The notes beneath the pieces are model-generated. The model saw only the letters and a list, made by a program, of their open reading frames with translations. It made no database searches and was not told the DNA's origin. Positions 4,553 through 59,841 of a stretch of 64,000 nucleotides of DNA are shown one piece after another. Every line of letters begins with the position of its first letter. Position 1 is the stretch's first letter. Position numbers and translations under genes: made by a program. The DNA lies in contig NC_043005.1 of NCBI RefSeq assembly GCF_006345805.1, positions 21,452,001 to 21,516,000 on the forward strand, read 5' to 3'. This stretch comes from Octopus sinensis (lineage: Eukaryota).

Positions 4553-4723
4553 CTATTACAAGAGTTGAATGTGGACCTCCAAAAGATGTTGTTGGTGCAA
4601 AGAAGTCCTACACTAACACCTCCTATAAATCTGAAGTGACCTACACATGTCCAGGAAATGAAATATTAAAATCAATATGCAAAGATAACTCTAAATGGAC
4701 TCCAGTTACATCTGATTGTGAAG
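4553..4723 (+). CDS. Exon S1, Sushi/CCP domain: ITRVECGPPKDVVGAKKSYTNTSYKSEVTYTCPGNEILKSICKDNSKWTPVTSDCE
   Basis: cacttctag|CT...GAAG|gtatat, 171 nt, 4 Cys plus Trp in the Sushi pattern. Absent from the ORF track because it has no start codon. Confidence 0.9.
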
Positions 4724-7700: not shown

Positions 7701-8370
7701 CCTGCTGATGTCAGCTCTACCTTTCCAAGATCAATAAAATAAAATACCTATCAAGTAGAGGGGTCAATTTAATTGATTGTCCTCAAATTTTTGTCCTTTA
7801 TACATTAGAAATTATTATTATTGTTGATTTTGTTATCTACATTTTTGCATTTGTCTCAATTTTACTTTAATTTCAGATGCTAAGCTCCATTTTGTGAAAG
7901 TAAAAGATGCAATCCTTGATACACCTAAGAAAACTTTGTGGAATAAGAAACATGTAACAGCAGATGAATGTGCTCATAAATGTTTATTTTATACAGATTG
8001 TTTAATATTTGAAATAGATAGAGGAAGTAGAACATGTTACTTCTCAAAGCAAAGTGCAGCTTCCGCCAAGAAATTAAAACCAAAGAAAGGCAGAGATTAC
8101 TACCAACGAATAAACTGTAATTATTCTCCGTGTTTCTCTTTACCTCTTTTTCTGAAAACTGTGATTTCATTTGTACTTCATAGTATACAGAAATCCACTT
8201 CTGCAAAGACAGACAAGTTTATCTATAAGGACAGACATAAGTACATTCCAGAAATAAGCAATTTTACAAAGTGTAATAACAGCCATTATTAATTTTGAAC
8301 ATTTTGAGCATGTTTTCAGTTGTTTCTTTCTCTGTGTGTAAGCAAGGAAATTCTTATTATTTTACTTAAA

Positions 8371-8408
<38 letters not shown>

Positions 8409-10988
8409 TTGATAGAATGGATTGATAGAATAGCTATGGACTTGTACTCCTTGGAGGAGCAAAAGTGGGAGGGTATCAAGGTAGAAGATGTAAGATCTGC
8501 TCTCAGGAGGTCAAGCAAATGGAAGTCTCCAGGAAAGGATAAAATTCCTAACTTCTGGTTGAATGCCTTCCCAGAGAGCCATGAACTGCTAACAGAACTT
8601 TACAATGATGTTTTGCAACACCCTAGTAGGATGCCTGCTTGGCTAGTTAATGGTTTAACATTCCTGCTCCCAAAAAGTGAAGAAACAAACGAACCAAAAA
8701 ACTATAGACCCATGACCTGCTTAACAACTATGTATAAAACGCTAACATCTGTCCTGACGGAATATACCTATAGTTTTTTAATAGACAGCAGCATATTCCC
8801 TAATGAACAGAAAGGATGTAAATGTGGATCATATGGTTGTAAAGATCAGCTACTCATCAAAATGATGATTTTAGAAGATTGTCACAAATGACACAAAAAC
8901 TTGTCAATAGCCTGGATAGACTATAAAAAGGCTTTTGATGGCCTACCATATAGCTGGATTAAGAAATGCCTGGAAATGTATAAAATAGCACTTACTCTGC
9001 GAAACCTTTTGTCTGTAAATATGAGATCATGGAGAACCACACTAACTTTGAACAGTGACGTTGAATCTCTAAATGCTAGTGATGTAAAAATTTCATGTGG
9101 CATTTTCCAGGGCGATTCACTATCACCACTCCTCTTTTGTTTAGCCTTAATACCTCTCTCAAAATTGCTCAATGATGCACAGTACGGGTATAAAATGTTG
9201 GATAAAAATATAAATCATCTCATTTACATGGATGATTTAAAGCTCTTTGCAAAAAATGACCAACAACTCAAGGGCTTACTAACGATTGTTAAACAATTCA
9301 GTGATGACATCAGAATGCAATTTGGCCTCAATAAATGTACACAAGCTACCTTTATCAAAGGGAAAAGGACAGAAACATCTAACGTTTACTTTGACCAGCA
9401 GAATGCCATAAAAGAGTCAGACCCAGCAGAGTGCTACAAGTACATTGAAGGGGACGGAATAAGGCATTCAGTGATGAAGGAAAGGATCAGGAGAGAATGT
9501 TATCACAGAGTAAGAGCAATACTCAAGACAGCTGAATGCGAGAAACAGGATTGAAGCGATCAATGCATTAGCCATACCAGTCATGACTTACAGTTTCAAT
9601 ATCATTAACTAGTCAATTACTGAAATATGTAATCTTGACAGAAAAATACGAAGACTGTTGACAATGCATAGAATGCACCACCCTAAGGCAGATACAGAAC
9701 AACTTTATCTGCCAAGAAAAGAGGGAGGCTGTGGACTTTTACAACTGACAATAACAATGAAGATTGCTACAATTGGCCAAGACACCTACCTGAAAAACTC
9801 TGAGGACTGGATGTTAAAACTTGTCTCAAAACATGAAAACAAGAAAGCATCATACTCAGTAACAAAACAGGCAAAGGAATATCTAAGTGAATTCTGAATA
9901 CAACAAAGTTCATACAAGAAACAAGCACAGAAAAAGCTAAGCGCATGAAAACCTGTACTAAAACTGCTGCCTTAGATATTCTGAATGATAAATGGCAAGA
10001 AAAACCTCTCAATGGCAAATACCCAAAGAGAGCAAATAATGCAGATATTGACAAAGCCCTGACCCATCAATGGTTAATGGCCTCTGGCTTAAAATGTGAA
10101 ACAGAAGGGTTTATCATAGCAGCTCAAGATCAATGCCTACCTACAAGGAACTACCAGGCCAACATATTAAAGAACGGCAGTAGCCCAACATGTCGTGTAT
10201 GTCAACAACAAAAGGAAACCATTGATCATGTTGTCTCCAAGTGCAGTCTTCTTGTGCCTACGGAGTATCTCAACAGGCATGATAGAGCTGCACAATATAT
10301 TCACTGGGTAATTTGTAAAAGCCTGGACTTGCCCCATGATAGAAACTGGTGGGAACACAAACCACCTCCAGTGCTTGAAAATGACCACATCTCACTCCTC
10401 TAGAACTTCACCATTCAAACTGACAGAAAGATAGATGTGAATAGGCCAGGCATCATAGTAAAAGACTTCAGACAAAAAACATGCCTCCTCATTGATATGA
10501 CTGTCCCAATCGATATAAACGTATCTGTCAAGACCTACCAGAAACTGAGCAAATATAAAGATCTGGAAATAGAAATCAGCAAGATGTGGAACCTGAAGAC
10601 AAAAACAATACCTGTTGTCATAGGTGCCCTGGGAATGATAGCAAAAAGGGCTGATTGCTACTTAACTCAGATACCAGGAAACCCCAAAATGGCAGAAATT
10701 AAACAGATAGTGCTCATGGGAACTGCTCATATCCTATGCAAAACACTTTCTATATAATCTCAAGTTTTAAAACAAACATAATTTTTGTATGGTTTTTTAG
10801 CCATTCACTAGTACAACACGAAGTACAAAACCAAATATATGGCACCCTAGGCATAACACCAACACGAACTTCCAACCTGTTGTCTCTTGAGGTCTCTGGG
10901 TGAGACTTGGAGCCAGCTTGTGCATATGTAAAGCAAAAGTCAAACATAGAATAATAATAATAATAATAATAATAGTAGTAGTAGTAGT

Positions 10989-11060
<72 letters not shown>

Positions 11061-14000
11061 TAGTAGTAGTAGTAATTTCAAATTATGGCACAAGGCCAGC
11101 AGTTTTGAAGGGACAATATTAGTTTGTGACTCAGACCTCAGTTCTTGACTGGTATTATAGTGTATTCACACCAGAGGGATGGAAGGCAGTTTTTCCTGAA
11201 AGAGTTTGAATTTGGAATGTTATGAGATAGAAGACATACAGCATGGCAACATGGCTTTTGCAGGGTGTTTCACTATTAACTGTTCTCCTTATTCTGATAC
11301 ACAAAATAACAGCTCTTTTTATCACCTACCATTATACCCACATGAAAAGAGTACACCTTCCCATGCAACTAGAATTAGAGAAGTTTCAGCTAAGACTAAA
11401 GAGCTCACACAACATAAAATAAGATTAAGTCCATAGTATTAAAAAGAAAACAGTTAGCAAATTCACTTATATTGATCTCAAGTATTTTATCTTTCCTATC
11501 AGGACCCTTTCTTCTTGATATACTGTGTTCAGGGAAAATTCAATAGATTTAGAAACCTCAGTATTAGAGTACTAATGAATACCAAGATGCCATTTCTATT
11601 ATGATGAATCTTTGTTAGTCAAAAAGAAATGTGAGCCATTTCTTTACATATCTATGAGGAACTTTAACTGGGTCAGAGTCAGCCTCAAAAAGTTCATTCT
11701 AAGGCTAGGTTCATACAGAAACAATTGCTTAACAATTTCAAGTTATATGAATAGCCATTCCATCAATATATTTAGAAAGAGTTTAATAGGTTTCTTCAAG
11801 AAGTTTGATTTAAACATAAGGATTACTACCAATATAACAACATTCAATTAAATTGACATCACTTCAATCTTCAAGTTAGGTATCACACAGAAAACTGAAT
11901 AAGAGAACAGACACCAGCATAAGAATTTCAGTTCTTACTCCCAAGCTATAATATAAAACTTAGTAACAAGCATTACTAATACAATCTCCAATTTAACCAG
12001 AAAATAAGACATTTCAGACATTTTTTAAAAGTACAAGATGTTAGCTAGGACTGACTTTAGTAAGAAATAAAAACAAAGCATCCTCCACATCTGAAGGGAT
12101 TTAATATGATAAAATAAACTGAGCCAGTCCTCCCTTCAGCTAAAATGTCTCCATGAATACGGCCAAGAACTATTTATTACACATTAGACATAATTTCTCA
12201 AGCACTCATAAGTATCATAAACTTATGAATGTGCATACTATTAAAGTTTGTTATCCATATGTACATAGCACGTATTGAATGTACAATAGGAAAAGCCTGC
12301 ATATATCCAGGCTTTATCCCAGAACACCCATCTCCAGGTGACTGTCAATATCAATCCACCTCTCTACTGTGAGAATTCGGTCTTTCTAACACGGTGGTAT
12401 ATAGTTTAACCATCACATCTAATAGTTTCTGAATGAATTACTGGATCATACAACCAGTGGCTTCAAGGCAAGTTGACATTTCTCCTGGAGCTGGCAGAAG
12501 ACAAACACCATGTCCATGGTGTTTTGGTTTGTTCTAAAATAACAGTGGTTCTCAGGAAGATGATCCACAGCAATGGTCAATGTTAGTCTATTGAGTAGTA
12601 TTCAAGCCAGGATCTTTCCTGTGATGGTGGGGTGATGCCTCTGTAATTGGAGCTATATAACTTTTCTGCTTATTCTTATAAATTGTGATGTTGATTGCAT
12701 TATTGATGTCTGGAGGAAGTATACCATGCTCCCAGCATTATTCAAAAATAAATTGTCCTTTAAAAAGTAATTATGCATCAGATGCTATATGACATTTAAT
12801 GTGTGTGAGTAGGAAATGTATTCCTTATTTTCTTCCTTTTTCCTTTCTAGCGAATGATGAGGTTTTACGAATTAAAAGCACTTCCATACCTGGGCAGGAT
12901 ACTTTTGGACGGCTGGAAAATGTGAGCTTAAAGGAGTGTCATAAAGTTTGTCATCAAACTCCAAGATGTAGATCTTTTGAGTATAAGGAAAAAGCTAAGA
13001 CCTGTAGTCGAAGTAATGTAACTCACTTGACACATGACCTTGAACCCAATAAAGAGAATTGGGATACTTACATCATTAACCCAGGTCAGTAGAGTTTTAT
13101 TTATTTTATTTATTGTGTGTTTCCACACATATATGTGTGTGTTTGTGTGTACTTACACATACGTACAAGTGTGCATACGATATACATACATATATCATCA
13201 CCATCATCATTTAACATCTGTTTTTTTATGCTGGTGGGAGTTGGCTGGTTTGACAGGAGCTGGTAAGGCCAAGAACTACACAAGGCCCCATTGTCTGTTT
13301 TGCATGGTTTCCAAGTTAGAGAGATAAAGGGAGCAGGTGAGTGAGAGGGTGAAATAAAGTGAGCAATAGTGAAAAAAGATGGTGATGAAGACGTGCTGAG
13401 GCATGCCCTTGACGGATATCGTTGGCGGAGGTGAGAATAAGTAAGGTGATACAGAGGATGAGTGGGTGATAAAGAGGTGACAGAAACAAATGATGTGTGA
13501 AATATAAGAGAGACTTGGGTTGGGGTTGCAGTAGATATGAGACAGCATTCTGGATGATAGCAAATAAGCAAGGTGTGAATGAATGAGAATAACACAGAGG
13601 CAAGACGGGACAGAAAGGTGGTGATTGGTGGAGACAGTAGGTGGGGGGAAGAGAATGAAAAATGGAAGAGTTTTTATGAGGATGTGGAGGGCAAAAGGAA
13701 GGCAACTGAGAAAGCAGGGGTATGTAGTATGAGCCTACTCTGCTCTCAGGTGATAGAGAAGTGATGGGTGTTAGGGGATGAAGTGTGGGGAGGAAGGTAG
13801 ACAGGTCAGAGAGGATGGCAGTGGGGGAGGAACAGAGTCCCTCATGGACAAGCATTACCTAGGTGATTTTAAGATCAATTTCGCTGTGGTGGATGGGTCT
13901 TCTGGAGGTGCCAAATATCTTGGTCCTATATAATTTCCTTCATTAGGCTCAACTTCTTTATGCAGCTGTCTACATCCATACACACCACATAATGAAATCA

Positions 14001-17000
14001 ATGCTTGCACACTGCATCTAATTGTTTTTATGCCTGACTTTTCTCTTAATACATGAGTGCTCTGTTGCACATGTACACTGACTTTTCACATCCAGTGGAG
14101 CAACTAACGTCATTCCTCTCTATTCTTTGCATGTACTCTGCATTCAAGGCCTACATCTCACTGCCATATAGCATTACTGCTGTACATACATAATCATCAT
14201 ACAGTCTTCATTTCACTCAGAGAGAGACAAGTTTGGTTGCCAACAGAGATAAAAACTGTCTGAATTTTCTCCATCCTATTCTTATTTGAGCAATTGCACT
14301 GCTGAACTAAGTGGCAGAAATTGTCTACTGCCTTTAGAGAGCCTGAAACAAATGTTAACAAAAATATGCATTCACTGATATTCCTAGCAATAATAATAAA
14401 TCAATGATAACATGGTAAAAAAAAAAAGACAGAAGCATTAGGATTTTCTGTCAATGAAATGGGGGGATCAAAGGAAGAAAATAAAATGATTGGGCAGCAA
14501 GTTACATATTATCAACAAAAGAAAGAGAAATTTGTTAAGGGACTTTTCTCTGAACATGTAGAATAGGGAAAGGAAAAAAGAATCTTTGTTCATATTTGCT
14601 CACCAGCAAAAATATATTGAAGGCAGGTGCTCATGGGTCTTTGCTTCAAACACATGGGTTCATCTAGAAGGAGATTTTAAAATCTATGTGCACAAACAAG
14701 AATTTGAATAAGCTTTCATACTTCCACTACTATGACTATGATAATCAATAATGATATTTATTGGTATGGACTCTGACAGAATGGGGAGAAACTGTAGTGA
14801 AGCAGCAGAAATAAATAATGTTGTAAAAAAATAATCTAAAAACTGAAGCATTGGGATTTTCTATCAATGAAACCAAGGGATTGAAGGGAGAAAATAAAAC
14901 GATTGAGTAGGAAGTTACATTTTATTGACAAGAGAAAGAGCAATTTGTACATATATACATACATGCAGGCATAAATAAATAAATAAATAAATACATACAT
15001 ACATACATACATACATACATACATACATACATACATACATACATACATACATACATTCATTCATTCATTCATTCATTCATTATGACTGCCCCCTCGTTAT
15101 CGGGTATGGCCATTGCACGAAGCTTAACTGTTACTAGTACTGTGATCGAATGTGACTTTTTAGCCCAGCTAAAGATCTACAATGTCTTGTACAAAATTGG
15201 CAACTAAGACCTTTACTGGTAATAGCCGGCTGTAGTTGTAACTGGGCTTCATGTACCTTTGCATGTCGTTTAAGTCCTCCTGCCGAAATACACTCTCTTC
15301 CACATGCCCGACAGATATGATTAGTATGGTGTGTTACACCACCACCAGTGGCCAGGTTGTCACTCATCTGTCTCATTTTATGACTACGAAGATGACTCAT
15401 GAGTCCAGCTTTACTGAGGCAGGGTCTTGCACAGACATTGCATGTCAGAATCAAAGGATGACCCTCCCTTCTGGAAGTGTAACAGCAATGCTCTTCCTGA
15501 CATCCCTCCTTACTTTCTCATGTGCAACTCAAGATTTCTCAAACGTGGCTGTCCCCTCATGCACAATCCTTCTCCACCTGCTACGATCAATAGCTATGCC
15601 TTCCCATGTGTCAGGAGAGATGCAAGCATCTCTTAAGGAAGCCTTCAGTAAGTCCTTATACTTCTTTTTTGGTTTATGTGGAGGTCGTTCTCCTTTAGCT
15701 AACTCTCCATAAAAGAGTTGTTTTGGCATCCTTGAATCCTACATTCTGACCAGATGACCACTCCATCTGAGCCTTTGCTTAAACACAAGAGCTTCTATAC
15801 TTACACATCGAGAGCCTTTGAGTATTTCAAGATCACTGATGCGGTCATCCCACTTAATGCTATAGATCCGTCTGAGGCACATCTGATGGAAACGTTTCAG
15901 ATGTTTAAGGTGGGATCGATATGTGACCCACGTCTTGCAGGCATAGAGAAGAGAAGGGAGCACACATGCCTTGTACACCTTTATCTTTGTCTTTCTGCAT
16001 ATGTCTCGCCGACTCCAGAGGTGCTTTTCTGGCCTTCCGAAAGCAACACTTGCTTTCCTAATTCTATATGGAACTTCATCATCCACATTGCCATATCTAT
16101 TAATAGTGCTTCCCAGGTAGACAAACTGAGCGACTACATCAAGTCGTTTACCATTCACATAGATATTTGGTACACTATACTGCTTACCAGGGGCAGGTTG
16201 ATGCATGACAACAGTTTTCTTGAGATTGACTGTCAATCCTAAGGCAGTGCAAGCATCAGAGAATGCATTCAAAATGTGTTGCATGTCAATCTCTGTGTGT
16301 GCTACTAGCTCACAATCATCAGCATACAAAAGGTCTCTTATGATAGAGGTAAATATCTTTGTTTTTGCAGCAAGGCGCCTGATACTAAATATGCTGCCAG
16401 AGGTTCGATAATGGATGTAAACACTGTATCTGCAGTTTCTGAATGCAATACAGAACACCATCGCGAAATATATGGAAAATAGGGTCGGTGCCAGAATATC
16501 CCCCTGTTTCACTCCATTTTGTATTGAAATGGGCTCCGACATCTTCCCTCTAACATTCACCCTACCATTCATGTCTTCATGAAAAGACCTAACCAAAGCA
16601 AGGAACTTTTCAGGACACCCAAGTTTCTGGAGGACTTTCCACAATGCTTTTCTATTGATGGTATCAAAGGCTTTTGTCAGATCGACAAACACCTGATACA
16701 AATCCAGACCCTGTTCCACACACTTTTCCTGAAGCTGTCTAGCTGAAAAGATCATATCAGCAGTGCCACATCACACACGAAAGCCAGATTGACTTTCTGG
16801 AAGAACACAATCTGCAATGAATTTCAGCAGATGATCCAGAAGTATCCTGCATAAAACCTTTCCTACAGCAGACAGCAATGATATTCCCCTATAATTACCA
16901 CAATCATTCCTGTTGCCAGATTGACTTTCTGGAAGAACACAATCTGCAATGTATTTCAGCAGATGATCCAGAAGTATCCTGCATAAAACCTTTCCTACAG

Positions 17001-26500: not shown

Positions 26501-27335
26501 TCATTTGAGTATCAGACAAAATGTGTTGTGCCATTTTTCTGGCACTTTAGCTTCAAAGTTCAAATGCAACTGATGTAAGCATTGCTTTCCCAGAGTCAAT
26601 GAAATATACTAGTGGTCAGGTGTATAAGCCAATTTCATTGATCAATTTCTACCTCAAAGTTTTGACCTAGTTTCTTTGATGAAAAGTTATTGTTGTTAAT
26701 ATTATTGTTTATTGGCTTAAATTTTCCTTTAATTCTAGATACTCAGATCCATTTTGTGAAAATAAAAGATGCATCTCTGGATGAAACAGGGAAAACATTG
26801 TGGGACAAGGAAGATGTAACAGTACATGAATGTGCAGGAAAATGTTTGTTAGATGAAAAATGTTTATCATTTGAAATGAATAAAGAAAATAAAAAATGTT
26901 ACTTATCAGAGAAATCTGCAAGTTCCTCCGACAAACTGAAGAAAAACAAAAACAAAGATTACTACCAGCGAGTAAAACGTAATTATTCTTTGTTTTATCA
27001 TTGGAATTCTCCTTCCTTTTTTTCCCTGAGATTTGTGATTCCATTTCTACTTCATAGTATGTAGACAACCAAATCTGTAAAGACATTGACAGGTTTACAA
27101 ATGAAGACAGAAAAAAATGCAATATTAAGAATTGTAAATACTTTTAAGTTATTCTTACTGAGAATTTATTCACCTTGAAAGATTTTATGCATGCTTTCGA
27201 TTGTATTTATATGTAAGAAAAGAAACTGTTCTTATTTTCCTTAAACCTGAATAGTAGTGGTTGTGGTAACACTTTTATGCATAAGTTCACTTGCATTTTC
27301 ATGTAAGAAAAGAAACGTCTTATTTTCCTTACACC

Positions 27336-47400: not shown

Positions 47401-50400
47401 TGAAATTTGGTTGCAATTCACGTTATTCACCCCAACTTATATGAAAGGCAAAATTGACTTTGGTTTGATTTGAGCTGATAGCCAACAGAACCTGATTACA
47501 TATTGCAAAGCATTTCTTCCAATTCTCTAACTTGTATGCATCTCCACATGATCATCATCACCATCATTTAACATCTGTTTTCTATGCTGGCAAGTTTTGG
47601 ACAGTTGTATACTGTCCAATTAACTGCAGAGCTGCATTAGGCCTAATATCATCTTTGACATGGTTTTTAGAGGCTTTCCTAGCACTAACCACTTTACAGT
47701 GTGTACTGGATCCCTTTTGTTGGTATTTGTAAGGTCACAAATAACTTGCAACACGAAATAAAGAAAAGGAAACAAAAATCTCCCTCAACTGAGTGGGAGT
47801 GTTTTGAGAGAGCAGGACGTAGATTTGTGCCATGTGTTGAAGGCTAAGGTATGATAAAGTGACAAGCATAGGTATCTTGCTATAGAGGAGATACACTGCT
47901 TTTCCATATTATGTGATGATGGGTAAGAGTAACAGGAAGATAGATTAAAGTTGGTGATAGCCGAGTACTAGATCTTGCTCTCAAGGTAAAAGATGATGAA
48001 TATAAAGGAGAATGTAGATTGTGGATGAAGAAGGAAGAAAAGGATAGATAATTTCATAAAGGTGTGGGAAGACATTGCACTAGAAGTGGGTGTATTGAGT
48101 GATAAAAGGTGAAGCTTTAGCTGATGGTAAGTATCGGTATGAAGAGAGAGGTGAAAGATAGAAGTGGCACGGCAAGGAGGAGGTGACAAACTGCAGGACA
48201 GAAGGAGTAGAGGAGGTGACAAACTACAGGACAGAAGGAGTATCATATATCTGCAAACAGATCAGAAAGTAGGGAGAGGGAGGTGAGGAGGTGATGATAG
48301 GGGTCTGAGGGTGGCTTTAGTAAGTGGGGCAAAAAATATCAGGGTGGGGTAATCGATAGCAAATATGAGAAGGTATAGAGAATGATAGCAAACGGGAGAG
48401 GTGTTAAAGATGAAGTATGGTAGATCTAAGCTGTTGCTCAAAGAGGATGTAGAGATTACTGAAGGCACTAAAAGAGGGTGGTCAACTGAAAAGAGCCTGA
48501 GGAGGGGATGATTATGAGAGTGAGGTAATCAGTAGTGCCAAAGTGAGGTTGAAGTGTGTGCTGATTCTGCTTTCAAATGATTCCAGCAGCTGAGTAGTAC
48601 TATGTACACATTAAAAATAAAGGTGAGGATGATGATGCAATCCTCTTGAATGTAGTAGAATCTCTATCTAGGGTTAGTTGAAAACACCCATAATCAAAGA
48701 TCACCTTGAACTCCGAGGTCAGGTGTCCTCTCCAAGTATTGTTCTCTGAGCTACAGGTTTATGCACAATAATCCCCATTCACTTAAGCCACTTTTGCCAC
48801 TGCTACTTTGCTTTCAATAATTTCCCTTGAGGACAGTGTGTTCCTCTCCATCCTCCCCTTCGTTACAAATGAGATTTATAAATGTAGAGAAGGGATTGAC
48901 TAAAGAGTAAAGTCACTGTTGTCTGACCATTTAACCTCATCCACCACACAACATCATTTGCTATAGCTACCACACAGAAAAACTGCTTTCTGCTTGCCTG
49001 AAGGAAAGTGTTGGGTAATCATACCACATACACCAGCAGCTGTTTGACAGAGTTTCATAACTCTGCAATGCTTGGACATTGAATGAATTTATGCACCTCA
49101 AAGAGGCCTGCTTGATAGCACTTACATGACTTTAGATTTTATCTTGGACCAGTAGTGCCCTTTAGTAGTAGCATTGTCAATCAAAGAACTTCAAAATGTT
49201 ATCCAAGGTGTTTGCTGATCAAAAGACAACTTCAGAAAAATATTCAGGATCACTTCCTGCATGGAAACCAATAGCAAAGTGGTTACTTATTGAACCAACA
49301 TATGGTTAATTAATGTTTTACTCCCCTCATTGTGTGGTGGAGGGGTAGAATTATGTTGATGTCTTATTTTGGCCATAAAATTCAGAAGAGAGAGAGCCTT
49401 GTGAAGATAATCACTTTTTTCATCTCATTTAAAGTAAAATTTCATCAAATTAAAATTTCTTAGCATGCTACTTTAAGTAGAGAGTGTCCATATTTACTAC
49501 ATAGTTATATGATTCACTAGATGGTGATGGAAGGGAAAGGATTTTTGATTTCCCAGACAAAACTTTTCAAAATAGTAAAGTGGTGAGTTACATTCTTTTA
49601 CATTTTCAGTTCAAATCTAAACAACTATTATAATTCTGAGGTTGATTTATTTTCATTTATATATTTACTACTCTGTGTGTGGCCTTCTGTTTGAGTTAGG
49701 AACCATTATCGTTAATATTGTTACCATCAATAATAATTATAATTATTCTTGTTGTTAAGGGTAATAGGTCGACGCAATCATTTGAGCATCAGACGAAATG
49801 TGTTGTAGCATTTGTTCTGGCTCATTAGCTTCAGAGTTCAAATGCTGCTGATGTTAATTTTGCCCTCGCAGGACCAATGGAATATGATACTGGTCCGGTG
49901 TAGAAGCCAATTTCATTGATCAATTCCTACCTCAAAGTTTCTATGATGGTAAATTATTATAGTTGTTGTTGATGTTATTGTTTATTGGTTTAAATTTTTC
50001 TTTAACTCTAGATCCTCAGATTCATTTTGTGAAAATAAAAGGTGCTACTCTGGATGTACCAGGGAAGATATTGTGGAAGAAGAAAAATGTAACAACAAAA
50101 GCCTGTGCAGAAAAATGTTTGTCAGACAAAAAATGTCTATCATTTGAAATAAATAAAGAAATGGGAAAGTGTTTCTTATCAAAGCAAGCTGCAAGTTCCT
50201 CCAAGAAAATTAAGAAAGTCAAGAACAAAGATTACTACCAACGAGTGAAACGTAACTATTCTTAGTATTTTATTTTAAGAATTATCCTCTCCTCTTCTTC
50301 AGAAATTTGATTCCATTTGAATTGCGTAGAATACTTATGGACAACTATTTCTGTAAAGATATTGAAGGTTCATCTGTAAAAGAAACAAAAAATATTAAGA

Positions 50401-52460: not shown

Positions 52461-55400
52461 CTAGCAGAGACTACCAGCATTTCCCGTGTTACATACAATT
52501 GAAGAATTAGACTTTTCTGTTATATTTTCTGGAATGAACTGGAATATCTATGTTTCAAATTTCATCAAAATTGCAGATGAGGGTTATTTCCCTCTTTACA
52601 CACCCTAAAAAAATTGTAATCGTGTCACATATATCCCATACTACTGATTTTTATGTGCATATTCCAAAATTCCAGTCTTATTGAACCTGTTAAAAAGATT
52701 TTGCTCCTGAAAAATGGAGTTCATGGAGCTCTAAAATGTGAGAGTTAAGGCCCCTGTTGAGGGTGGGCATCTTAATTTCAACCAGAGAAGTTAAACTGTT
52801 GAGAATCTTGTTAACTTGGGTTTAATATCTATTGTTTGAATTTCTTTGAAATAGGAAATATATATTCACTGGGTTTGTAAAAGAGAGCAAAGCTACCGGA
52901 AACCAAAAGACGAATGATCACAATAAGTAGTCAGCTACCCTACCCTAGTCGTTACCACTCCCAATATAGTATTCCTCACCATCCAGGTGACAGGCACAGC
53001 CATAAGATGCATTGCGAATCTATAGCAATTGGAAGGGCATGACCCATCTGAAATAAACATTAACAACTGTGTGACATGAGGGCTAAGGAGAAATGAAAGT
53101 GTCACCTCTGGAGTTTGCAAATAACCACTATACTGATATGTAACTGGACAGAATAAATTTACGATATATAAATATCTTTGAATAACCAGTCACTCATCTG
53201 GGAAGGCCTTGAAATCAATGTTACCATCTGGGGACTATGTGTGACCCTGTGATAATAAAAAAACTGAAAGGAGGTCTGCAATCAAATAACTTTACTCAAC
53301 ACTTAGCAACTGAATCAATGGAGTCAAAGATGCTTCTCATTTACTCAACAATTTATGCACTACATTGCAGAAACCACAATGTAAGTGTATGTCAAAGCAA
53401 ACTGTTACACTGTTGTACCATTGAATTAAAAATAATGCTCATCTTTTATGCTCGGGTAACCCTACAGCTTCCAAGAGCACAACTGTATTCATTTTTACTT
53501 AGATAAAATGACAAAATTGTGGGTATTAAGTCCCCATGGAGGGGTCTTTCTAAGTTGTAAGATGATGAAATTTTATAAATATTACTTCATTTGTGTCTAA
53601 ATTTTATGGTTAAAATTTTATCAAGAGCAAAAATATATGAGTTGTCATGGGGGTTATGGCACTTATGCATAGAATATAATTTCCAAATTTCATAAAGATC
53701 GATTCAGTACTTTTGACCTAGTTTTGGATCATAAATGACTAAAATTGGGTGTTAAGGCCCCCATAAGAGTGTTATATATATTTTTATATATATATATAAA
53801 TAATAATAAATATTAGGGAATAAATCCAAATTTACAGGGAAAAAATCAGATTTAGGATTAAATCCAATTTTATAGTAAAATATTATATAATATTAATTAG
53901 AGACAAAACCACTATTTTGCAAAACAAACAAGGAAAGACTTAATCAATACATAACATTTTAATAAAAAGTAAAAAAACCGCCACTACAATTGTTTCATGT
54001 CTTGATCGACAATCTTCAGGTGGATTTCCGATCTAAAATATCAATATTTTAAAATATAAGTATAAAAAATAATTTTAAAATAATTAAAGTATCAATGAAA
54101 AAATATAAATATATAATCTATATATAACCTATATATAATCCATATATAATCAATATATAAACTAAAATAAACCTATCAACAATTAAATATAAAACAAAAT
54201 AAAAATAAACTATATATACACCCATACACATATAACTAATTATATATAACCATATCTAAATACATACACTAACTCACACACCTATATATACATCCCTATA
54301 CATACACATAAAAACGTCTAGGCAACGATAATTAAATAAAATAGCCAAATACTTCAACACAATACTTATTCATACTCCCTCACACACACATACAACCCAC
54401 ATTCATAAACAATATACGTATACCCGCTCACACATACATATACAAACATACAGAACTCGATATATACACCAATATATTCACACCCACATCTATACAGATA
54501 AATAAATTACGCAAATAATCCCCCCCCCCACACACACACATTCACACATACATAAACACTCAAAAGCAAAATAAACAATTCTTTGCACGTGGTGATCGAA
54601 CGTTTTTTTTTTAATTATGAATGGAATAATATATAATCAACTTAAATATACAGAATCTACTACAAAACACCAATAAACCATCATGATAAATGAAACCCAC
54701 ATACATATAATGATAAAACTCCCCCTACCATACACAATTACACCTATATAGCAATCCCATATACACATTCACACACAAATATACATACGTAAAACACACA
54801 CACACAACATATACGTATACCCCCTCACATATACATATACATACTTACTAAACTCGATATATACAACAATATTTTCACACCCACACTCATACAGATAAAT
54901 AAATTACACAACTAAAATACGCACACACACACACACATTCACACATACATAAACACTCAAAAGAAAACCAACATTACTACACATAATACAATATATAAAA
55001 TACTTCATAATTAACCAGAATATCATAAGTAACAAGATTAACATAAGGAGAAAAAATATACATACTTTCAAGTCAGTTTCAAATTATGAAGTGAAATTAA
55101 ACTCTAGCCGTTAAAAACGTCAAACAAAATTACGTTACCATAGGAACCTAACATATGTATAAAAAGTATTCGCGCTCTGGAAACGAACGTCATTTAAAAT
55201 TATGAATGGAGAAATGGAATAAATGGAATTAAAAATTATATTCACGTGGTAAACGAACATTACTTAAAAATTATGAATGGAATAATGTAATAAAATAACA
55301 AACATCATAAATAGACATAAATTACTACGAATTCTTTAATAAAACTACCATGATAAACTAAAACTCATAAATACATATAATGATAAAACCTCCCTTTACT

Positions 55401-57420
55401 AAACTCTATAACATACCTATATAGCAATCCCCCTAACCTATACATTCACACACAAATACACACACGTAAACCACACACCCACGACATATACAAATACCCA
55501 CCTCACTCACACATACCTATACATACGTATAAACCTCAATATATACACCAAAAACCCACTCCCACCCCACACAGACAAATAAACACATACATCCCCAAAA
55601 ATGGGCGCAATCCCACGCACACCAATCATGCATGTATACAATTGCACACACAAGAACAATACATAATCAACCCAAATATACAGAACCTACCACAAATCAC
55701 CAACAAACCACCATGACAAATGAAACCCAAACACATACAATGACAAAACTCCCCCCACCATACACAATTACACCCACATAGCAATCTCCATATATACATC
55801 CACACACAAACACACATACGCAAAACACACACACACACAACACATACGTACACCCCCCTACATACCCATATACATACGTACCAAACCCGACATACACAAC
55901 AATACGCTCTCCCCCTACCATACACAATTACACCTATATAGCAATCCCATATACACATTCACACACAAATATACATACGTAAAACACACACACACAACAT
56001 ATACGTATACCCCCTCACATATACATATACATACTTACTAAACTCGATATATACAACTATATTTTCACACCCACACTCATACAGATAAATAAATTACACA
56101 ACTAAAATACGCACACACACACACACATTCACACATACATAAACACTCAAAAGAAAAACAACATTACTACACATAATACGATATATAAAATACTTCATAA
56201 GTAACCAGAATATATGTATTTATATATATATATGTATTTACATATATATATATATATATAGATATAGATATATATATACATAGATATAGATATATATACA
56301 CCCACACACATACAAAGATGAATTGATAGATACAACTGACTGGGCAAACAAAAATATGAGACACTGCCTAGTGTTTTTTTTATGTTGATAAGCCTGGTAC
56401 TTATTCTATTAGTCTGTTCTTGTGAAACCAGTAAGTTATGGGGATGTAAATAAATGAACAGTAGTTGTGAAACAGTGATGAGGGTGAAACACATAGACGA
56501 TTGATTTCAGTTCCTGTCTAAGAAATCCATATACATATATATGGATTTCTTAGACAGGAACTGAAACAAATCAATCATATTTATATGTATGTATATATGT
56601 AAGTGTATGTGTGTGTTTTTGTCTCTGTGTTTCATCCTCATCACTGCTTCACAACTGCTGTTCATTTATTTACATCCCCATAACTTACTGGTTTCACCAG
56701 AACAAACTAATAGAATAAGTACCAGGCTTATCAACATAAAAATATATATATATATCGTTTAGCATTCGCTTTCCATGCTAGCATGGGTTGGACGGTTCAA
56801 CTGGGGTCTGGGATGCCAGAAGGCTGCACCAGGCCCAGTCTTATCTGGTAATGTTTCTACGGCTGGATGCCCTTTGTATACACACACACGCACACACACA
56901 GAGACAAATTGATAGATACAACTGAGTGGGCAAAAAACAAAATATGAGACACTGCCTAGTGGGTTTTTTTATTTTGATAAGCCTTGTACTTATTCTTTCA
57001 GTTTCTTCTAGTGAAACAAGTAAGTTATGGGGATGTAAATAAATGAACACCAGTTGTGAAGCAGTGATGAGGGAGAAACACAAAGACACACACATATACA
57101 TAGATACATACATATATATACAATTGATTTCTTTCAGTTTCTGTCTTCAAAATCCACTGACAAGGCTTTGGTTGGTCTGAGGCTATAGCAGAAGATGCAT
57201 GCCAAGTTACCACACACTGGAACTGAAACATGTGTTTTGGAACCAAGTTTGTTACCACACAGCCACACCTACACCTATGTATGTGTGTGTGTGTATATAT
57301 ATGTATGCATGTATATATGTGTATATATATGTGTACATATTACATCTATATCTATAGAAATACATCTATACATATACATGTGTACATATACAGCTGTACA
57401 TATACATGTATATATATACA

Positions 57421-57476
<56 letters not shown>

Positions 57477-59841
57477 AATTAAAATTTAAAATAATAAGGG
57501 TGAAAAATTGAATATTAATTTGATTAATATGAATTGAAAATCAGTGGTGTAGCATATAAGACCATAGCGGATCTTCTGCTAGCAAAATGGATTTCCACTG
57601 TTAATGGTTCATCCCTGTTATATAATACTTTCACTTTAATAGTTTCAGTATTAAAGTGGAAGTGTGTGACATTACAATAGAGAGATCTTTTTGTTTCACT
57701 TTGAACATGTAATACTGAAATAGTGGAGCAGATATGATATTGCTGTGAGCTTGCCCTAGGCAAGAAGTTAAAAATGTTTTTTGCCCATGACACTACATGG
57801 ACCCATGTGTAAAATTTAAATGAAATTGGTTGTGTAGTTCTCAAGTTTTAGGGATTCACACAGACTGACAGACAGCCACACATTCTCAGTTTTATATATA
57901 TATATATATATATATACACTCTCACATACATATAGACATGTATATGGTTGTGTGTATATAAGTTTTGTTTATTGTATGTATAGGAGGAAGGAATCTGGGG
58001 CCCTGTTTGTTTTTTCCTTATCAAACTCCAAATTGCTCAAATGCACAGGCAGAAAATTTGGGATGTGGTATTTACGTTTAATTCCTGCAGCTTTGGCACA
58101 CCATTTTCCTGCTGATATAATATATATAAATATATATATAGACATATATATCATCATCATCGTTTAACGTCCGAGTTCCATGCTAGCATGGGTTGGACGA
58201 TTTTGACTGAGGGCTGGCGAACCAGATGGCTGCACCAGGCTCCAATCTTGATCTGGCAGAGTTTCTACAGCTGGATGCCCTTCCTAACGCCAACCACTCC
58301 GAGAGTGTAGTGGGTGCTTTTTACGTGCCACCGGCACGGGGTCCAGTCAGGCGGTACTGGCAATTACCTTGATCAATTCTTTTTACACATGCCAGTGTAG
58401 TATAATATAATATAGATGTATAAACAAAATCAAAAATCAATAAATAGCAAGATACAATTATATAAAGCAAATTACCTCATTAAGAAAATCTCTGTAAGAG
58501 TTGAAAGCAGTATCTACACTGAGAAGTAATTTTTATTACCATCTAAACATGGGTGTCCTCTAAGAACATAGAATACTGATATTTCAACCCCAGGAGGATG
58601 CCTCCTCCTGCTGGTTACCCAGTGTGCTTCGGACTCAATATACATTCCCAGTTATCAAGACCATCAGATCATGAGGTTTCGACCTTATTATGATCATCCT
58701 TGGTGATAGATAATCATCTACAAGACATAGCAGTAGTACACCCCCCAGCTTGCAATATAAAGAAAATAATTGACACACAATCACTGATTTTGCAACAAGC
58801 AAATTAGCTTGTTAAGAAAATCTCTATAAGGGATGAAAGTAATATCTATACTGAGAATTAATCTTTATTGCCATCTAAACATGGGTGTTCCATACATACT
58901 GCAAAATGGTGTGAACTGCTGCTATGTCTAGTAGACAAGTAGCCATCACCATAATAGAGTTCAATACTGCATGGCCTAATGGTCTCAATAACTGTGGTAT
59001 TAGGGAGTTCTCTTTTGCTTGCAATATATATCAAGTGCAAAGTGCACTGGGTAACTCCTCTGGGGGTTAAAATAGCTGTATTGTCAACTCTAAGAGAACA
59101 TCCATGATTAGATTGTGATAAACGTTACAAATGTAAAATGTCTAAATATTTTTCCTAACTTTTATCTAATTTTCTTTTACATGCAGATTAATTTTTTTAT
59201 ATATATTTCGGTCATTTTTCAACAAATATAAATTTTTATTATGTTTGAGGAATTCATTATGATAGGAATGCTGCAAAGCATCGATTTCAAGTCATAAAGT
59301 GGCAGAGCTTGTCATACAGAGCAAAAATAAACAGGATTGGATCTGCACACAATTAAAGGAGAGGTGTACAAATGTATTGTTCACAGCCTAACTATGGAGA
59401 CAAGATTTCAAATAAGTCTGAAGGTGTTCTACAAATCATATTCTGATTAGGGTGTCATTTTGCAGATCAATTATTTGTTTTTAATAAATTGGCCATTTCG
59501 CACCACATGCTTTACAATATTTAACATATGCTAGGAAATGTGTGTGTGTGTTTGAGTGGGTAGATGTATATGTAATATATTTCTTGTTTTCTATTTTGTT
59601 TCAGCTGATGAAGGGCCTATTATACTGAAAAAAGTTAGCATACCAATCCAGGCTACTTTAGGACGGCTTAAGGATAAGACCTTAATGAAGTGTAAAAAGG
59701 CTTGTCAACAATATGTAGGATGTAACTCTTATCAGTACAATGCTGATGATAAGTTGTGTGATCTGAGTAATGTGACTCAGTTGAGTGATAATGTACTTAA
59801 ACCCAATGATGGAAAGTGGGATATATACATAGCTAACCCAG
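4553..59841 (+). CDS. Partial multi-exon gene (13 exons seen) encoding a large modular, probably extracellular protein of Sushi/CCP and PAN/Apple repeats: (S-A-B)x3-S-(S-A-B)
   Basis: All 13 exons have AG/GT boundaries and lengths divisible by 3 (168-240 nt), all are phase 1-1, and the joined frame has no stop (2748 nt). Cys/Trp patterns match the Sushi and 4-Cys PAN/Apple folds. No first or last exon was found in the window. Confidence 0.9.
5535..6150 (-). mobile_element. Old L1/Tx1-like LINE 3' fossil; homologous copies at about 24780-25250, 33025-33660 and 48620-49225
   Basis: Minus strand reads VLHALIQCP (zinc-knuckle-like) and VAVAKEVWWLRLKG. The same DNA block is at the same place in each Sushi to PAN_A intron. 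Confidence 0.6.
7625..7820 (+). mobile_element. SINE copy just upstream of the PAN_A acceptor; homologous copies at about 26490-26690, 34590-34790 and 49770-49960
   Basis: gagcatcagacaaaatg...ttctgagttcaaat...aataaaataa...attattatt matches the abundant SINE also at 37140-37860, and has the same position in all four units. Confidence 0.7.
7877..8116 (+). CDS. Exon A1, PAN/Apple domain type A: AKLHFVKVKDAILDTPKKTLWNKKHVTADECAHKCLFYTDCLIFEIDRGSRTCYFSKQSAASAKKLKPKKGRDYYQRIN
   Basis: tttcag|AT...AACT|gtaatt, 240 nt, C-x3-C-x5-C...C pattern and terminal DYY motif typical of PAN domains. Confidence 0.9.
8409..10949 (+). mobile_element. 5'-truncated R4/Dong-clade non-LTR retrotransposon (RT, CCHC knuckle, restriction-like endonuclease), pseudogenised
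   Basis: WKSPGKDKIPNFWL, YRPMTCL, AWIDYKKAFD, GIFQGDSLSPLLF, HLIYMDDLKL, CRVCQQQKETIDHVVSKC, RP(D>G)IIVKD...LLIDMTVP...KYKDL. Several stops and frameshifts. Flanked by (AAT)11 at 8375-8407 and (AAT)8 at 10950-10973. Confidence 0.9.
10950..11072. repeat. Compound trinucleotide microsatellite (AAT)n(AGT)n(AGC)n(AGT)n; other long microsatellites at about 14990-15080, 20077-20190, 28600-28660, 44403-44472 and 59920-60015
   Basis: Directly visible. Confidence 0.95.
11200..12740 (+). mobile_element. Very old LINE-like fossil; homologous block at about 50600-52050
   Basis: Shared words such as ccattata(cc/t)cacatgaa(a/g)agagtaca and ccaagctataat in the same order in both introns; no intact ORF. 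Confidence 0.45.
12851..13084 (+). CDS. Exon B1, PAN/Apple domain type B: NDEVLRIKSTSIPGQDTFGRLENVSLKECHKVCHQTPRCRSFEYKEKAKTCSRSNVTHLTHDLEPNKENWDTYIINP
   Basis: ctttctag|CG...CCAG|gtcagt, 234 nt, 4 Cys, SFEY and WDTY motifs. Confidence 0.9.
15056..17195 (-). mobile_element. 5'-truncated RTE-BovB-like LINE with RT, C-terminal C2H2-type zinc fingers and an (ATGA)n tail; pseudogenised
   Basis: NYRGISLLS, VFVDLTKAFDT, GVKQGDILAP, LLYADDC, LRWSGHLVRM, KQLFYGEL, three CxxC...HxxxH-like motifs. Three in-frame stops (16771, 15739, 15529) and one frameshift before the fingers. Confidence 0.9.
17902..19184 (-). mobile_element. Full-length (1283 bp) mariner element with terminal inverted repeats of about 38 bp and TA target-site duplications; transposase decayed
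   Basis: Left TA-cgtggagtgttcattaaaaatttcccttgactcacttc versus reverse complement of right TA-cgaagggtgttcattaaagattttccctgagtcacttc. Minus-strand SVIRFLNLKG...EMKEVYGDNAPSY (HTH), WIPQML, and a YR*GLHSCIKWWEKCV C-terminus. A second small fragment lies at about 17295-17396. Confidence 0.9.
19620..20060 (-). mobile_element. Decayed RLE-type (HERO/R2-like) retrotransposon C-terminal fragment; a related fragment lies at about 43630-43885
   Basis: The 43.8 kb piece reads LKECEDASWSVEYFPIKVGCRGFIGHSV, typical of the end of the HERO-like endonuclease. The 19.6-20.0 kb piece is more degraded. Confidence 0.45.
20511..22278 (-). mobile_element. Penelope-like element: GIY-YIG remnant (about 21440-21870) between inverted pseudo-LTR arms of about 310 bp
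   Basis: 20511-20820 is the reverse complement of 21945-22278 (e.g. tagttaggttgaaggtgtatgttgat / atcaacatacaccttcaacctaacta). Minus frames give CNCRTSSSCPLECNCL...TYIGSTENHLKT*YNHH...NKPCQLCTNESYHIL. Confidence 0.8.
22231..22275 (+). ncRNA. Degenerate hammerhead motif at the end of the Penelope pseudo-LTR; mirror copy at 20514-20557 (-)
   Basis: ACAGU CCAAUGA A GGC UUAGCUG GUC GAAA C UUCAAA GUC ACUGU. Stems I-III are present but the core CUGA is mutated to CCAA. Confidence 0.5.
22760..23270 (+). mobile_element. Degraded RTE 3' ORF fragment
   Basis: LGIRGIRCNMQERRLHW and RGKPRKMWDKVV motifs. Confidence 0.6.
24293..24463 (+). CDS. Exon S2, Sushi domain: LFNIDCGPPKEVVNAVKSYKTTTYKSEVTYTCPKGEQLKSTCGKDNKWTPVTSACN
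   Basis: aatcccag|CT...AACG|gtaaca, 171 nt, paralogous to S1 including the flanking intron. Confidence 0.9.
26739..26978 (+). CDS. Exon A2, PAN type A: TQIHFVKIKDASLDETGKTLWDKEDVTVHECAGKCLLDEKCLSFEMNKENKKCYLSEKSASSSDKLKKNKNKDYYQRVK
   Basis: aattctag|AT...AAAC|gtaatt, 240 nt. Confidence 0.9.
29879..30109 (+). CDS. Exon B2, PAN type B: DEPLKLKRVSVPSKAILGKLKNKSLKECNEACFQYQACSAYQYNEKTKLCELSNATQLNNELKPSNEGWDIYIPLP
   Basis: ttttccag|CT...CCAG|gtcagt, 231 nt. Confidence 0.9.
30540..31270 (+). mobile_element. Penelope-like fragment: GIY-YIG (about 31049-31225, +) preceded by a probable inverted pseudo-LTR segment
   Basis: CYIGQTGISLRQRTTIHKEQIHHPQYRQLKVSEHIERC; hammerhead-like remnant on the minus strand at 30745-30785. 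Confidence 0.65.
31928..32095 (+). CDS. Exon S3, Sushi domain: LTKIDCGPPKEVPGTFISYNTTTYKSVVTYTCQDGEILKAACKENNEWTPEVSCK
   Basis: aactccag|CC...AAAG|gtaatg, 168 nt, one codon shorter than the other Sushi exons. Confidence 0.9.
32575..32860 (+). repeat. Direct tandem duplication with a 145-bp period
   Basis: ctatactagaagtcagcaataatctaaaacagatttctgattct starts at both 32595 and 32740. Confidence 0.85.
34835..35074 (+). CDS. Exon A3, PAN type A: AQIHFVKVKGAALDIAGKSLWKEKKVTPEACANECLTDKKCLSFEIKKKSGKCYLSKETAATSKEIKSDNSRDYYQKVK
   Basis: aattctag|TT...AAAC|gtaata, 240 nt. Confidence 0.9.
37140..37865. mobile_element. Cluster of three SINE copies (+, -, +)
   Basis: cagaatcgt(t)agcatgcc...aaaatgctta...ttctgagtt(c/g)aaatt...actttgcc consensus at about 37140, 37620 (minus) and 37645. 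Confidence 0.75.
37870..38760 (-). mobile_element. Old RTE-BovB-like RT fragment
   Basis: LFADDCALISDTLEGIQ and DNHKGISL...FVRVILN...YPESKC. Confidence 0.7.
38850..40051 (-). mobile_element. Near full-length mariner element, transposase pseudogene (about 39868 to 38860)
   Basis: MKVTKEHIQHILLYE...VYGD...WFQKF, SDKKWVLY, SVWWDMKG, FHQENA, YPPYSLDITSSDNHLF (YSPDLAPSD-like), RWKSIVENEGEY. A 5' TIR-like ttgggtcatcccataaataatgcag follows TA at 40052-40053; the 3' TIR was not recognised. Confidence 0.85.
40544..40777 (+). CDS. Exon B3, PAN type B: YDDLFTFKKTSIPEKDTLKRLKNKSLKDCYKACYKNSECHSFEYNKKAKFCDQSNATHLTDDLQPNKKGWDTYVFNP
   Basis: ttttctag|CC...CCAG|gtcagt, 234 nt. Translated by hand; this frame is not in the ORF track. 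Confidence 0.9.
42181..42351 (+). CDS. Exon S4, Sushi domain not followed by PAN exons: NDKINCGPPRDIVGASKSYSSTTYRGEVTYTCPHGEKLKSKCGNDYKWTSVNSTCE
   Basis: aattccag|TT...GAAG|gtaatg, 171 nt, translated by hand. Confidence 0.88.
45118..45522 (+). mobile_element. Copy of the RTE 3' UTR (SINE-like); further copies at about 56760-56870 (-), 58160-58400 (-), 63780-63990 (-), 13200-13310 (-), 17760-17900 (-), 47560-47700 (-)
   Basis: ggagtggttggcgttaggaagggcatccagc...ccaacccatgctagcatggaaa..ggacg..aaacgatgatgat. Confidence 0.8.
45525..45779 (+). mobile_element. Helitron RepHel/PIF1 helicase C-terminal fragment
   Basis: LPFALERNRFPIHLSYATTINKSKGQIFDKVGLFIPEPVFGYGQLYVAFSR corresponds to PIF1-family motifs V/VI (TINKSQGQ, HGQLYVAxSR). 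Confidence 0.75.
46594..46764 (+). CDS. Exon S5, Sushi domain: YKDIDCGNPKDIAGAANSYEATTYKSEVTYTCPEGEKIKSICEKDNKWTPIVETCD
   Basis: aatttcag|CT...GACG|gtaaca, 171 nt, translated by hand. Confidence 0.9.
50012..50251 (+). CDS. Exon A4, PAN type A: PQIHFVKIKGATLDVPGKILWKKKNVTTKACAEKCLSDKKCLSFEINKEMGKCFLSKQAASSSKKIKKVKNKDYYQRVK
   Basis: actctag|AT...AAAC|gtaact, 240 nt. Confidence 0.9.
53800..56200 (-). mobile_element. CA-rich, internally repetitive non-coding element carrying a hammerhead motif (Penelope-related or non-autonomous)
   Basis: Near-identical 292-bp blocks at 54719-55010 and 55909-56200, plus degenerate copies; hammerhead near the left end; no credible ORF. Confidence 0.5.
53981..54023 (-). 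ncRNA. Minimal type I hammerhead ribozyme of the Penelope-associated kind
   Basis: 5'-CCAC CUGAAGA U UGUC GAUCAA GACA U GAAA C AAUU GUA GUGG-3'. Stem I CCAC/GUGG, core CUGANGA and GAAA, stem II UGUC/GACA, palindromic stem III ACAAUUGU, GUA cleavage triplet. Confidence 0.75.
56373..56745. repeat. Large inverted duplication of a SINE-like repeat with a perfect 29-bp hairpin at its centre (56505-56566)
   Basis: tttcagttcctgtctaagaaatccatata-cata-tatatggatttcttagacaggaactgaaa. 56373-56498 is nearly the reverse complement of 56620-56745. A third, direct copy lies at about 56890-57090. Confidence 0.85.
59605..59841 (+). CDS. Exon B4, PAN type B: DEGPIILKKVSIPIQATLGRLKDKTLMKCKKACQQYVGCNSYQYNADDKLCDLSNVTQLSDNVLKPNDGKWDIYIANP
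   Basis: gtttcag|CT...CCAG|gtcagt, 237 nt. Confidence 0.9.

Follow-up and report, generated by a model that had tools for sequence, protein, structure and literature searches.

The 64,000-nucleotide stretch of Octopus sinensis DNA analysed here as a whole (the window; contig NC_043005.1, positions 21,452,001 to 21,516,000) carries 13 exons, each encoding a single Sushi (S), PAN_A (A) or PAN_B (B) domain, and these are probably an internal slice of one very large array of single-domain exons that lie on the same strand and encode a giant secreted product. Once spliced, the product is identical to residues 1666-2580 of XP_036361601.1, the RefSeq 'uncharacterized protein LOC118764742 [Octopus sinensis]' (labelled P0008 here). 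The chain, which an initial annotation had read from the letters of the window, is therefore already a computed gene model and not an unannotated gene. The cephalopod origin guessed in that annotation was right. The domains and a small, uncharacterised family of relatives were known, and what is new is the hugely amplified octopod architecture, which is undescribed: literature searches gave no published account of LOC118764742 or the neighbouring loci and nothing relevant on Sushi, PAN or apple proteins in octopus, cephalopods or molluscs.

The exons span positions 4553-59841 of the plus strand, and each is flanked by AG and GT, is of phase 1-1, and has a polypyrimidine-AG acceptor and a GT donor (26 of 26 splice sites canonical). 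Joined, they give 2748 nt, or 916 codons with 0 stops, as the initial annotation had read them. The exons and the two outer introns are as follows.

1-4552, plus strand: intron upstream of S1, the preceding PAN_B exon lying outside the window; retroelement debris including the tail of an open reading frame (ORF) at 1190-1240
4553-4723, plus strand: S1, Sushi/CCP exon of 171 nt, Pfam Sushi, region of residues 1666-1722 of XP_036361601.1
7877-8116, plus strand: A1, PAN_A exon of 240 nt, basic (isoelectric point [pI] 9.7), Pfam PAN_1 E 7.7e-10
12851-13084, plus strand: B1, PAN_B exon of subtype I, 234 nt, with a conserved SN[AV]T sequon, PAN_1 E 5.3e-09
24293-24463, plus strand: S2, Sushi exon by boundaries and Pfam
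26739-26978, plus strand: A2, PAN_A exon by Pfam, member of the triplet modelled with AlphaFold2
29879-30109, plus strand: B2, PAN_B exon of subtype II, 231 nt
31928-32095, plus strand: S3, Sushi exon of 168 nt, one codon less than the other Sushi exons
34835-35074, plus strand: A3, PAN_A exon by boundaries and phase
40544-40777, plus strand: B3, PAN_B exon of subtype I
42181-42351, plus strand: S4, Sushi exon, first of an S-S pair that marks a higher-order repeat boundary
46594-46764, plus strand: S5, Sushi exon, second of the S-S pair
50012-50251, plus strand: A5, PAN_A exon, pI 9.95
59605-59841, plus strand: B5, PAN_B exon of subtype II, 237 nt
59842-64000, plus strand: intron downstream of B5, the next Sushi exon lying outside the window; fragment of a reverse transcriptase of a long interspersed nuclear element

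The domain order of the spliced product is (S-A-B)x3-S-(S-A-B), and the Pfam calls, with PAN_1 found in 8 stretches (E 3e-66) and Sushi in 5 (summed E 7.4e-12), agree with the architecture originally proposed. The modules have the family features of Sushi (PF00084; 20.0 bits for a single module against a cut-off of 20.7) and of PAN (PF00024; 36-46 bits for single modules against a cut-off of 21.4). Exon lengths differ by whole codons only, and the splice signals are class specific, with all four PAN_B exons ending in CAG|GTCAGT and the Sushi exons having near-identical acceptor regions. The two PAN_B subtypes alternate along the window (B1 and B3 versus B2 and B5), with 54-56% identity inside a subtype and 43-47% across, and the similarity of the flanking introns is also subtype specific; this pattern suggests amplification in units of two triplets or more. 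Searching the window by tblastn with the exon peptides found no further copies, pseudo-exons or remnants, nor any lost PAN_A or PAN_B exon between S4 and S5.

The RefSeq model confirms that the chain is open at both ends, and it is itself visibly truncated. LOC118764742 encodes 2643 residues and takes up 152.7 kb of a 109.7-Mb chromosome in assembly GCA_006345805.1. On the N-terminal side, the model enters the array in the middle of the pattern with a PAN_B module that is absent from the window, and on the C-terminal side, it has one more Sushi module, also absent from the window, followed by a read-through end. Residues 1-17 of XP_036361601.1 (MTKDRDTWHLAQHKKTN) are 59% identical to the tail (MTRDRDLWKYAVRKKTR) of a retroelement ORF at 926-1246 of the plus strand of the window, the tail lying at 1190-1240, and because of this match, the RefSeq start codon probably lies in a fragment of a transposable element (TE). 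The domain string of the whole model is ABSABSSABSaBSABSABSSABSABSABSABSSABS, and in this protein and its relatives, the extra Sushi of the S-S pair recurs every 2-4 triplets. The model was recovered by an exhaustive phmmer search against 1.84 billion representatives; a word-indexed homologue search had missed it together with its close relatives P0009, P0010 and P0154, which the exhaustive search also returned. A collinear orthologue was sought among the first seven Octopus matches and rejected, the best of them, at 57% identity, being in a paralogous register.

All of the closest relatives of the product are models from Octopus and go by the names 'uncharacterized', 'SVEP1-like' or 'hypothetical'. 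Between such models, the gaps annotated as intergenic are crossed by single-domain Sushi, PAN_A and PAN_B exons of the same strand in O. sinensis, O. vulgaris and O. bimaculoides. More is missing from the chain in the window than the first and last exon that were first supposed: it is one part of an array that extends over about 0.6 to more than 1 Mb. The array is at least 0.57 Mb long in O. bimaculoides, while O. vulgaris and O. sinensis each have about 1 Mb or more of it. The annotated residues visible in the array models sum to more than 14,000. With one exon in about every 2 kb of the O. bimaculoides array and in every 4-5 kb of the O. sinensis array, extrapolation, as opposed to counting, puts the total at roughly 240-280 exons.

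The O. bimaculoides models share one strand of CM046610.1, where they lie head to tail in an interval that opens at 88.248 Mb at the latest and ends at 88.816 Mb; their order is P0001, P0006, a 1865-residue model, P0003, a 4083-residue model and P0002. The last of these ends in a GON domain (E 6e-33) and is the only array model with a distinct C-terminal domain; a CACHD1-like gene comes next. Searching the loci with the exon peptides of the window and then refining the boundaries gave about 74 intact exons out of 77, flanked by AG and GT, of phase 1-1 and 171, 240 or about 234 nt long, which keep the S-A-B order across the intervals annotated as intergenic. The few broken exons, and also two of the model ends, fall at runs of N on CM046610.1 (9189-9982 of locus L001, 34777-34894 of L004 and 36719-37229 of L002), and since these runs truncate exons where LOC106869402 and LOC128248838 start or end, they explain part of the fragmentation of the annotation. 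In O. sinensis, exons also continue on both sides of LOC118764741. The only clear pseudo-exon in any gap-free locus is a 47-residue partial duplicate of the next PAN_A exon in this species (L006 53579-53719, CM016867.1), 1.6 kb upstream of the intact copy. A 4470-residue O. vulgaris model, with a gene of 415.7 kb, bridges the break between P0001 and P0006 of O. bimaculoides; a 2247-residue Sushi-PAN model ends 2.9 kb upstream of it, P0005 starts 4.5 kb after it, and P0004 starts 2.9 kb after the end of P0005. The 4470-residue protein is filed in a 90% cluster whose representative is a 380-residue fragment.

Three annotation efforts have split the region into several models, and it could accordingly consist of independent paralogues in tandem, with LOC118764741 and LOC118764742 among them, and each of these genes would encode a medium-sized Sushi-PAN protein. 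P0001 of O. bimaculoides and P0154 of O. vulgaris even begin at one shared methionine in one PAN_B exon, which could be a real internal start. However, no signal peptide is found on any array model across the three species, although all of the domains are extracellular and disulfide bonded. The model ends lie in the middle of domains, at assembly gaps or in TE-derived sequence, and they vary by species to the point that the O. vulgaris model bridges O. bimaculoides breaks. Intact, in-phase exons stand between the models, of which only one has a C-terminal domain of its own. We therefore regard a cluster of separate genes as rather unlikely.

The reading frame and the disulfide scaffold of the array have been held by selection, and the intact exon chain is far beyond chance. 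When the consensus of each exon class was mutated neutrally to the observed divergence of each exon (11-22%) in 3000 runs, the mean number of in-frame stops was 28 and the minimum was 11, compared to 0 observed, and 62% of the Cys codons were kept, compared to 52 of 52 observed. In an alignment of 17 Sushi-PAN_A-PAN_B triplets from four species, 12 of 12 Cys residues, W48 of the Sushi module, the DYYQ motif at the junction of PAN_A and PAN_B and the S-N-x-T sequon of PAN_B are invariant or nearly so, with C6, C32, C42 and C55 of the Sushi module and W48 invariant throughout.

The array protein nevertheless evolves fast overall, with different rates in the scaffold and in the rest of the protein. 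For array orthologues of O. bimaculoides and O. vulgaris (853 codons), the nonsynonymous divergence (dN) was 0.078 and the synonymous divergence (dS) was 0.094, with a ratio (omega) of 0.84 by NG86 and 0.92 by YN00. The omega value was 0.21 for the scaffold columns, while the dN of 0.113 at the remaining, variable columns compares with a median Kimura two-parameter divergence of 0.115 in the flanking introns. Low omega in the scaffold together with a neutral-like dN elsewhere indicates a conserved disulfide scaffold that carries surfaces changing approximately neutrally. Among the paralogous exons of the window, omega ranges from 0.46 to 1.33. The ortholog values are also what would be seen if the array were largely a decaying or inert by-product of runaway exon duplication, with few modules, if any, in use; besides the ortholog ratio and the match between variable-position dN and intron divergence, the nucleotide identity of 65-82% between paralogous exons, similar to the roughly 70% of their flanking introns, and the duplicated PAN_A fragment in L006 speak for that explanation. 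It is nevertheless very improbable given the lack of stops, the complete retention of Cys codons and splice sites, length changes restricted to multiples of 3, the constraint on the scaffold and the intact exons of O. bimaculoides, where the exceptions are cut by N gaps.

A second reading of the same rates is that of a diversified immune or prey- or microbe-recognition array, with PAN modules under positive selection and exon skipping that generates isoform repertoires. The variable columns give an omega value of 1.71 (NG86), a partition that is partly circular, as the columns were picked for variability, and in which dS differs between the partitions; moreover, dN is no higher than intron divergence. 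Skipping in various combinations is open to the exons, as their phases are symmetric (1-1), and the apple domains of MIC4 and SML-2 are lectins. Modules that would be expected are missing in some models, such as the BSBSBS stretch of P0154, but these absences may be annotation errors. We consider a recognition array of this kind a minor possibility, on a par with the cluster of separate genes, and relaxed and diversifying selection are not separable from the array rate data.

The likely source of the giant array that we favour is a compact secreted protein. A query made from array exons retrieved GON-Abd-1 of Abdopus aculeatus, a 465-residue protein with the architecture signal peptide-PAN_A-PAN_B-Sushi-GON that is 44-51% identical to array cassettes (E 2e-135) and 48-51% identical to those of P0002 over about 215 residues. 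The 90% cluster of GON-Abd-1 also includes O. sinensis LOC115215708, O. bimaculoides LOC106874924 and O. vulgaris CAI9728787. As in the array, these short GON genes have one domain per exon, and they lie on the chromosome and strand of the array, 0.1-0.9 Mb upstream of it:

O. sinensis: short gene at 20.34 Mb, LOC118764741 at 21.27 Mb
O. vulgaris: short gene at 23.25-23.29 Mb, 4470-residue model from about 23.60 Mb
O. bimaculoides: short gene at 88.124-88.135 Mb, first sampled array exon at 88.248 Mb

The interval between the two holds an NDUFV1-like gene (Complex1_51K and NADH_4Fe-4S domains; L010 26150-30609, CM046610.1 from about 88,140,288 onward) in O. bimaculoides, where the short gene and the array are thus separate transcription units. 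The short proteins (GON-Abd-1 and -2, R4G2C1 and R4G7D0) share PAN_A, PAN_B and Sushi modules with the array, and the GON domain that closes the O. bimaculoides array is 47% identical to that of GON-Sep-2 from Sepia pharaonis (R4FJA6), which consists of a signal peptide, Sushi and GON. The short proteins differ from the array in having a single cassette, as opposed to dozens, a signal peptide that is clear by inspection and only 291-489 residues. They are also better conserved, being 89-91% identical between genera, and the short gene has an omega value of 0.49 (dS of 0.090, O. bimaculoides versus O. sinensis), compared to about 0.84 for the array.

Within the exhaustive phmmer search, the repeated Sushi-PAN-PAN architecture came from Octopus species only, and below the family, the scores fall to generic multi-Sushi or GON proteins. 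No characterised protein with this repeat was found, in line with the initial annotation, but the cassette itself does have relatives in the compact GON-domain family of coleoids. Shorter cassette relatives are present in Argonauta and Sepia, among them a Sepia pharaonis gene that ends in PAN_A-PAN_B-Sushi-Sushi-GON. Other octopod secreted proteins, all of which have signal peptides, reuse the PAN_A-PAN_B didomain and its DYYQ junction as an N-terminal cassette; there it is joined to VWD-C8-TIL-VWA, is joined to a Thr-rich, mucin-like stretch with three WSC domains, or is simply doubled (carriers are P0117, a 'zonadhesin-like' protein of Argonauta hians, P0132, LOC106869731 of O. bimaculoides, and P0035 of Argonauta hians). 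Similarity between paralogous exons of the window extends for 20-850 bp into the flanking introns, with about 70% identity there, and it does so too between window exons and the O. bimaculoides loci, which shows that the unit of duplication was the exon with its intron. The array may thus have arisen by tandem segmental duplication, exon and flanking intron together, of the PAN_A-PAN_B-Sushi cassette of a protein like GON-Abd-1/LOC115215708, whose gene would be the one still lying upstream on the array strand. The symmetric exon phases mean that exons can be gained, lost or skipped without a frameshift, and they probably enabled the expansion and may allow skipping.

Modelling and fold comparison are consistent with an extracellular binding protein. 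AlphaFold2, run on the S2-A2-B2 triplet with the 17-sequence alignment, gave a predicted local distance difference test score of 82 and a predicted template modelling score of 0.69, with PAN_A-PAN_B modelled best and each PAN module consisting of one helix and strands. Foldseek against the PDB matched the model to the apple domains of factor XI and prekallikrein, apple domains 1-2 of Toxoplasma MIC4, the galactose-binding lectin SML-2 of Sarcocystis, the plasminogen PAp domain and the N domain of hepatocyte growth factor (HGF), and a profile search of PDB sequences returned the CCPs of DAF, CR1, CR2 and MCP together with MIC4 and SML-2. The product is rich in Lys (15.5%), has a pI of 9.0 and contains 12 N-glycosylation sequons in 915 residues; PAN_A is the most basic module type (pI of 9.4-9.95 in three of four). 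We picture the product as a giant, secreted, N-glycosylated and lysine-rich 'beads-on-a-string' protein in which every PAN_A-PAN_B didomain, locked by disulfides, would bind a glycan, polyanion or protein in the manner of an apple domain, the Sushi modules would be spacers, and dozens of units would make the binding multivalent, with surface residues evolving at a near-neutral rate on a conserved scaffold. An extracellular role in recognition, adhesion or matrix, as suggested in the initial annotation, is still the best reading.

Tandem PAN/apple domains act as extracellular carbohydrate-binding units in the apicomplexan proteins MIC4 and SML-2, which match the array in sequence and fold; these proteins, from an unrelated lineage, have 2-6 apple domains and no Sushi or GON domain, and the likeness (about 16-18% identity) is one of fold and overall sequence. 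Factor XI, plasma prekallikrein, the plasminogen PAp domain and the HGF N domain, the best Foldseek matches, have a four-Cys core in common with the PAN modules of the array, and array PAN_A resembles the heparin-binding HGF N domain in being basic. The vertebrate PAN proteins pair PAN with kringle or serine protease domains, neither of which is found in the array product, and a factor XI/prekallikrein label was rejected, as no protease domain occurs in the product or the family models and the likeness is at the fold level only. The Sushi modules share the CCP fold, four Cys residues and a conserved Trp with the regulators of complement activation and SVEP1, but in the array, they occur in runs of at most two that alternate with PAN didomains, unlike the long CCP runs of multi-CCP proteins. 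Domain content rules out a complement regulator and also the SVEP1 label given to P0010, P0154 and P0005, which have PAN and Sushi domains only and no VWA, EGF, pentraxin or long CCP runs, making 'SVEP1-like' a naming artefact. Nor does ADAMTS9/GON-1, the label on O. vulgaris CAI9728787, apply: proteins of that type have a reprolysin catalytic domain, a disintegrin-like domain and TSP1 repeats before GON, and Pfam found only PAN, Sushi and GON in P0002, P0017 and P0155. The SE-cephalotoxin family combines LDL-receptor class A, TSP1, EGF and Sushi domains (bioRxiv 10.64898/2026.04.09.716377); the array product has no LDL-receptor class A, TSP1 or EGF domain and is dominated by PAN, and this candidate was also set aside.

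Long arrays of PAN exist elsewhere, as in proteins of the annelid Dimorphilus with SUEL and 20-22 PAN domains and no Sushi. Drosophila Dumpy, hemicentin, SCO-spondin and the large mucins are very large secreted proteins built of many small disulfide-bonded modules, typically encoded by exons of symmetric phase. All of these giants use other module types, and none has a Sushi-PAN_A-PAN_B unit or a GON terminus.

A bolder possibility is that the array forms a single octopod-specific gene over its entire length of about 0.6 to more than 1 Mb, with one enormous mRNA or a few such mRNAs as its transcripts. The secreted protein would have some 14,000-20,000 residues; a small coleoid GON-domain protein of the salivary or venom gland would have supplied the cassette, amplified more than 60-fold, and the product would bind multivalently and diversify rapidly in octopus saliva, mucus or apical matrix. 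We put this forward tentatively and think it somewhat doubtful in this full form. Several points weigh against a giant secreted product as such. A query made from the most upstream O. bimaculoides exons gave no upstream model that could represent the 5' end of the array, and the GON terminus was seen in O. bimaculoides only, not in the window or XP_036361601.1. A junction-spanning query found no spliced fragments in the protein collections, and the short Logan-derived proteins are all single exons with intron read-through, i.e., genomic DNA. The case for a single transcription unit comes from exon continuity, which would fit internal promoters or several large transcripts as well, and an omega value near 1 at about 60% of the positions fits relaxed constraint too. 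Finally, the names GON-Abd and GON-Sep reportedly come from posterior venom-gland cDNA of coleoids, in work by Ruder et al. in 2013, and they are silent on expression of the array itself. The posterior salivary gland is on this account the first place to look and not a finding, and exocrine secretion or apical matrix is the most likely setting for the product, as the weakest part of our reasoning.

The rest of the window is typical of a TE-rich intronic landscape, in line with the initial description. The composition is 35.6% GC with an observed-to-expected CpG ratio of 0.21 and many microsatellites and TEs, and Rfam and tRNA scans of the window gave no matches. The introns hold RVT_1 fragments at 8892-9551 (plus strand), 15742-16770 (minus strand) and 62196-62567 (plus strand), a mariner Transposase_1 fragment at 18219-18539 (minus strand) and a UvrD/Pif1-like helicase fragment at 45501-45776 (plus strand), possibly of a Helitron. 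Intronic ORFs resembling C2H2 zinc fingers and PHD fingers (15137-15517 and 355-855, both on the minus strand) are probably parts of retroelements. The 9.3-kb intron between A5 and B5 contains an A/C-rich low-complexity block at 54000-56100 (GC skew of -0.63) and a 157-bp tandem duplication at 55749-56061.

In conclusion, if the array is one gene, it represents an extreme amplification of an exon cassette, from a 465-residue secreted protein to more than 14,000 residues within the octopod lineage; the gene would probably be among the largest of cephalopod genomes and its product among the largest animal proteins, and it might have a bearing on the unsequenced high-molecular-weight glycoprotein fractions of octopus saliva. 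If it is instead several ordinary paralogues, it is a modest lineage-specific gene family. Annotation pipelines fragment loci of this type at assembly gaps and TE insertions and give the pieces misleading names such as 'SVEP1-like' and 'ADAMTS9-like'. The array is a natural system in which to follow how modules diversify under strong constraint on their scaffold, and its family link to the coleoid GON-domain proteins offers a testable lead, in salivary gland, mucus or matrix, on the function of these proteins.

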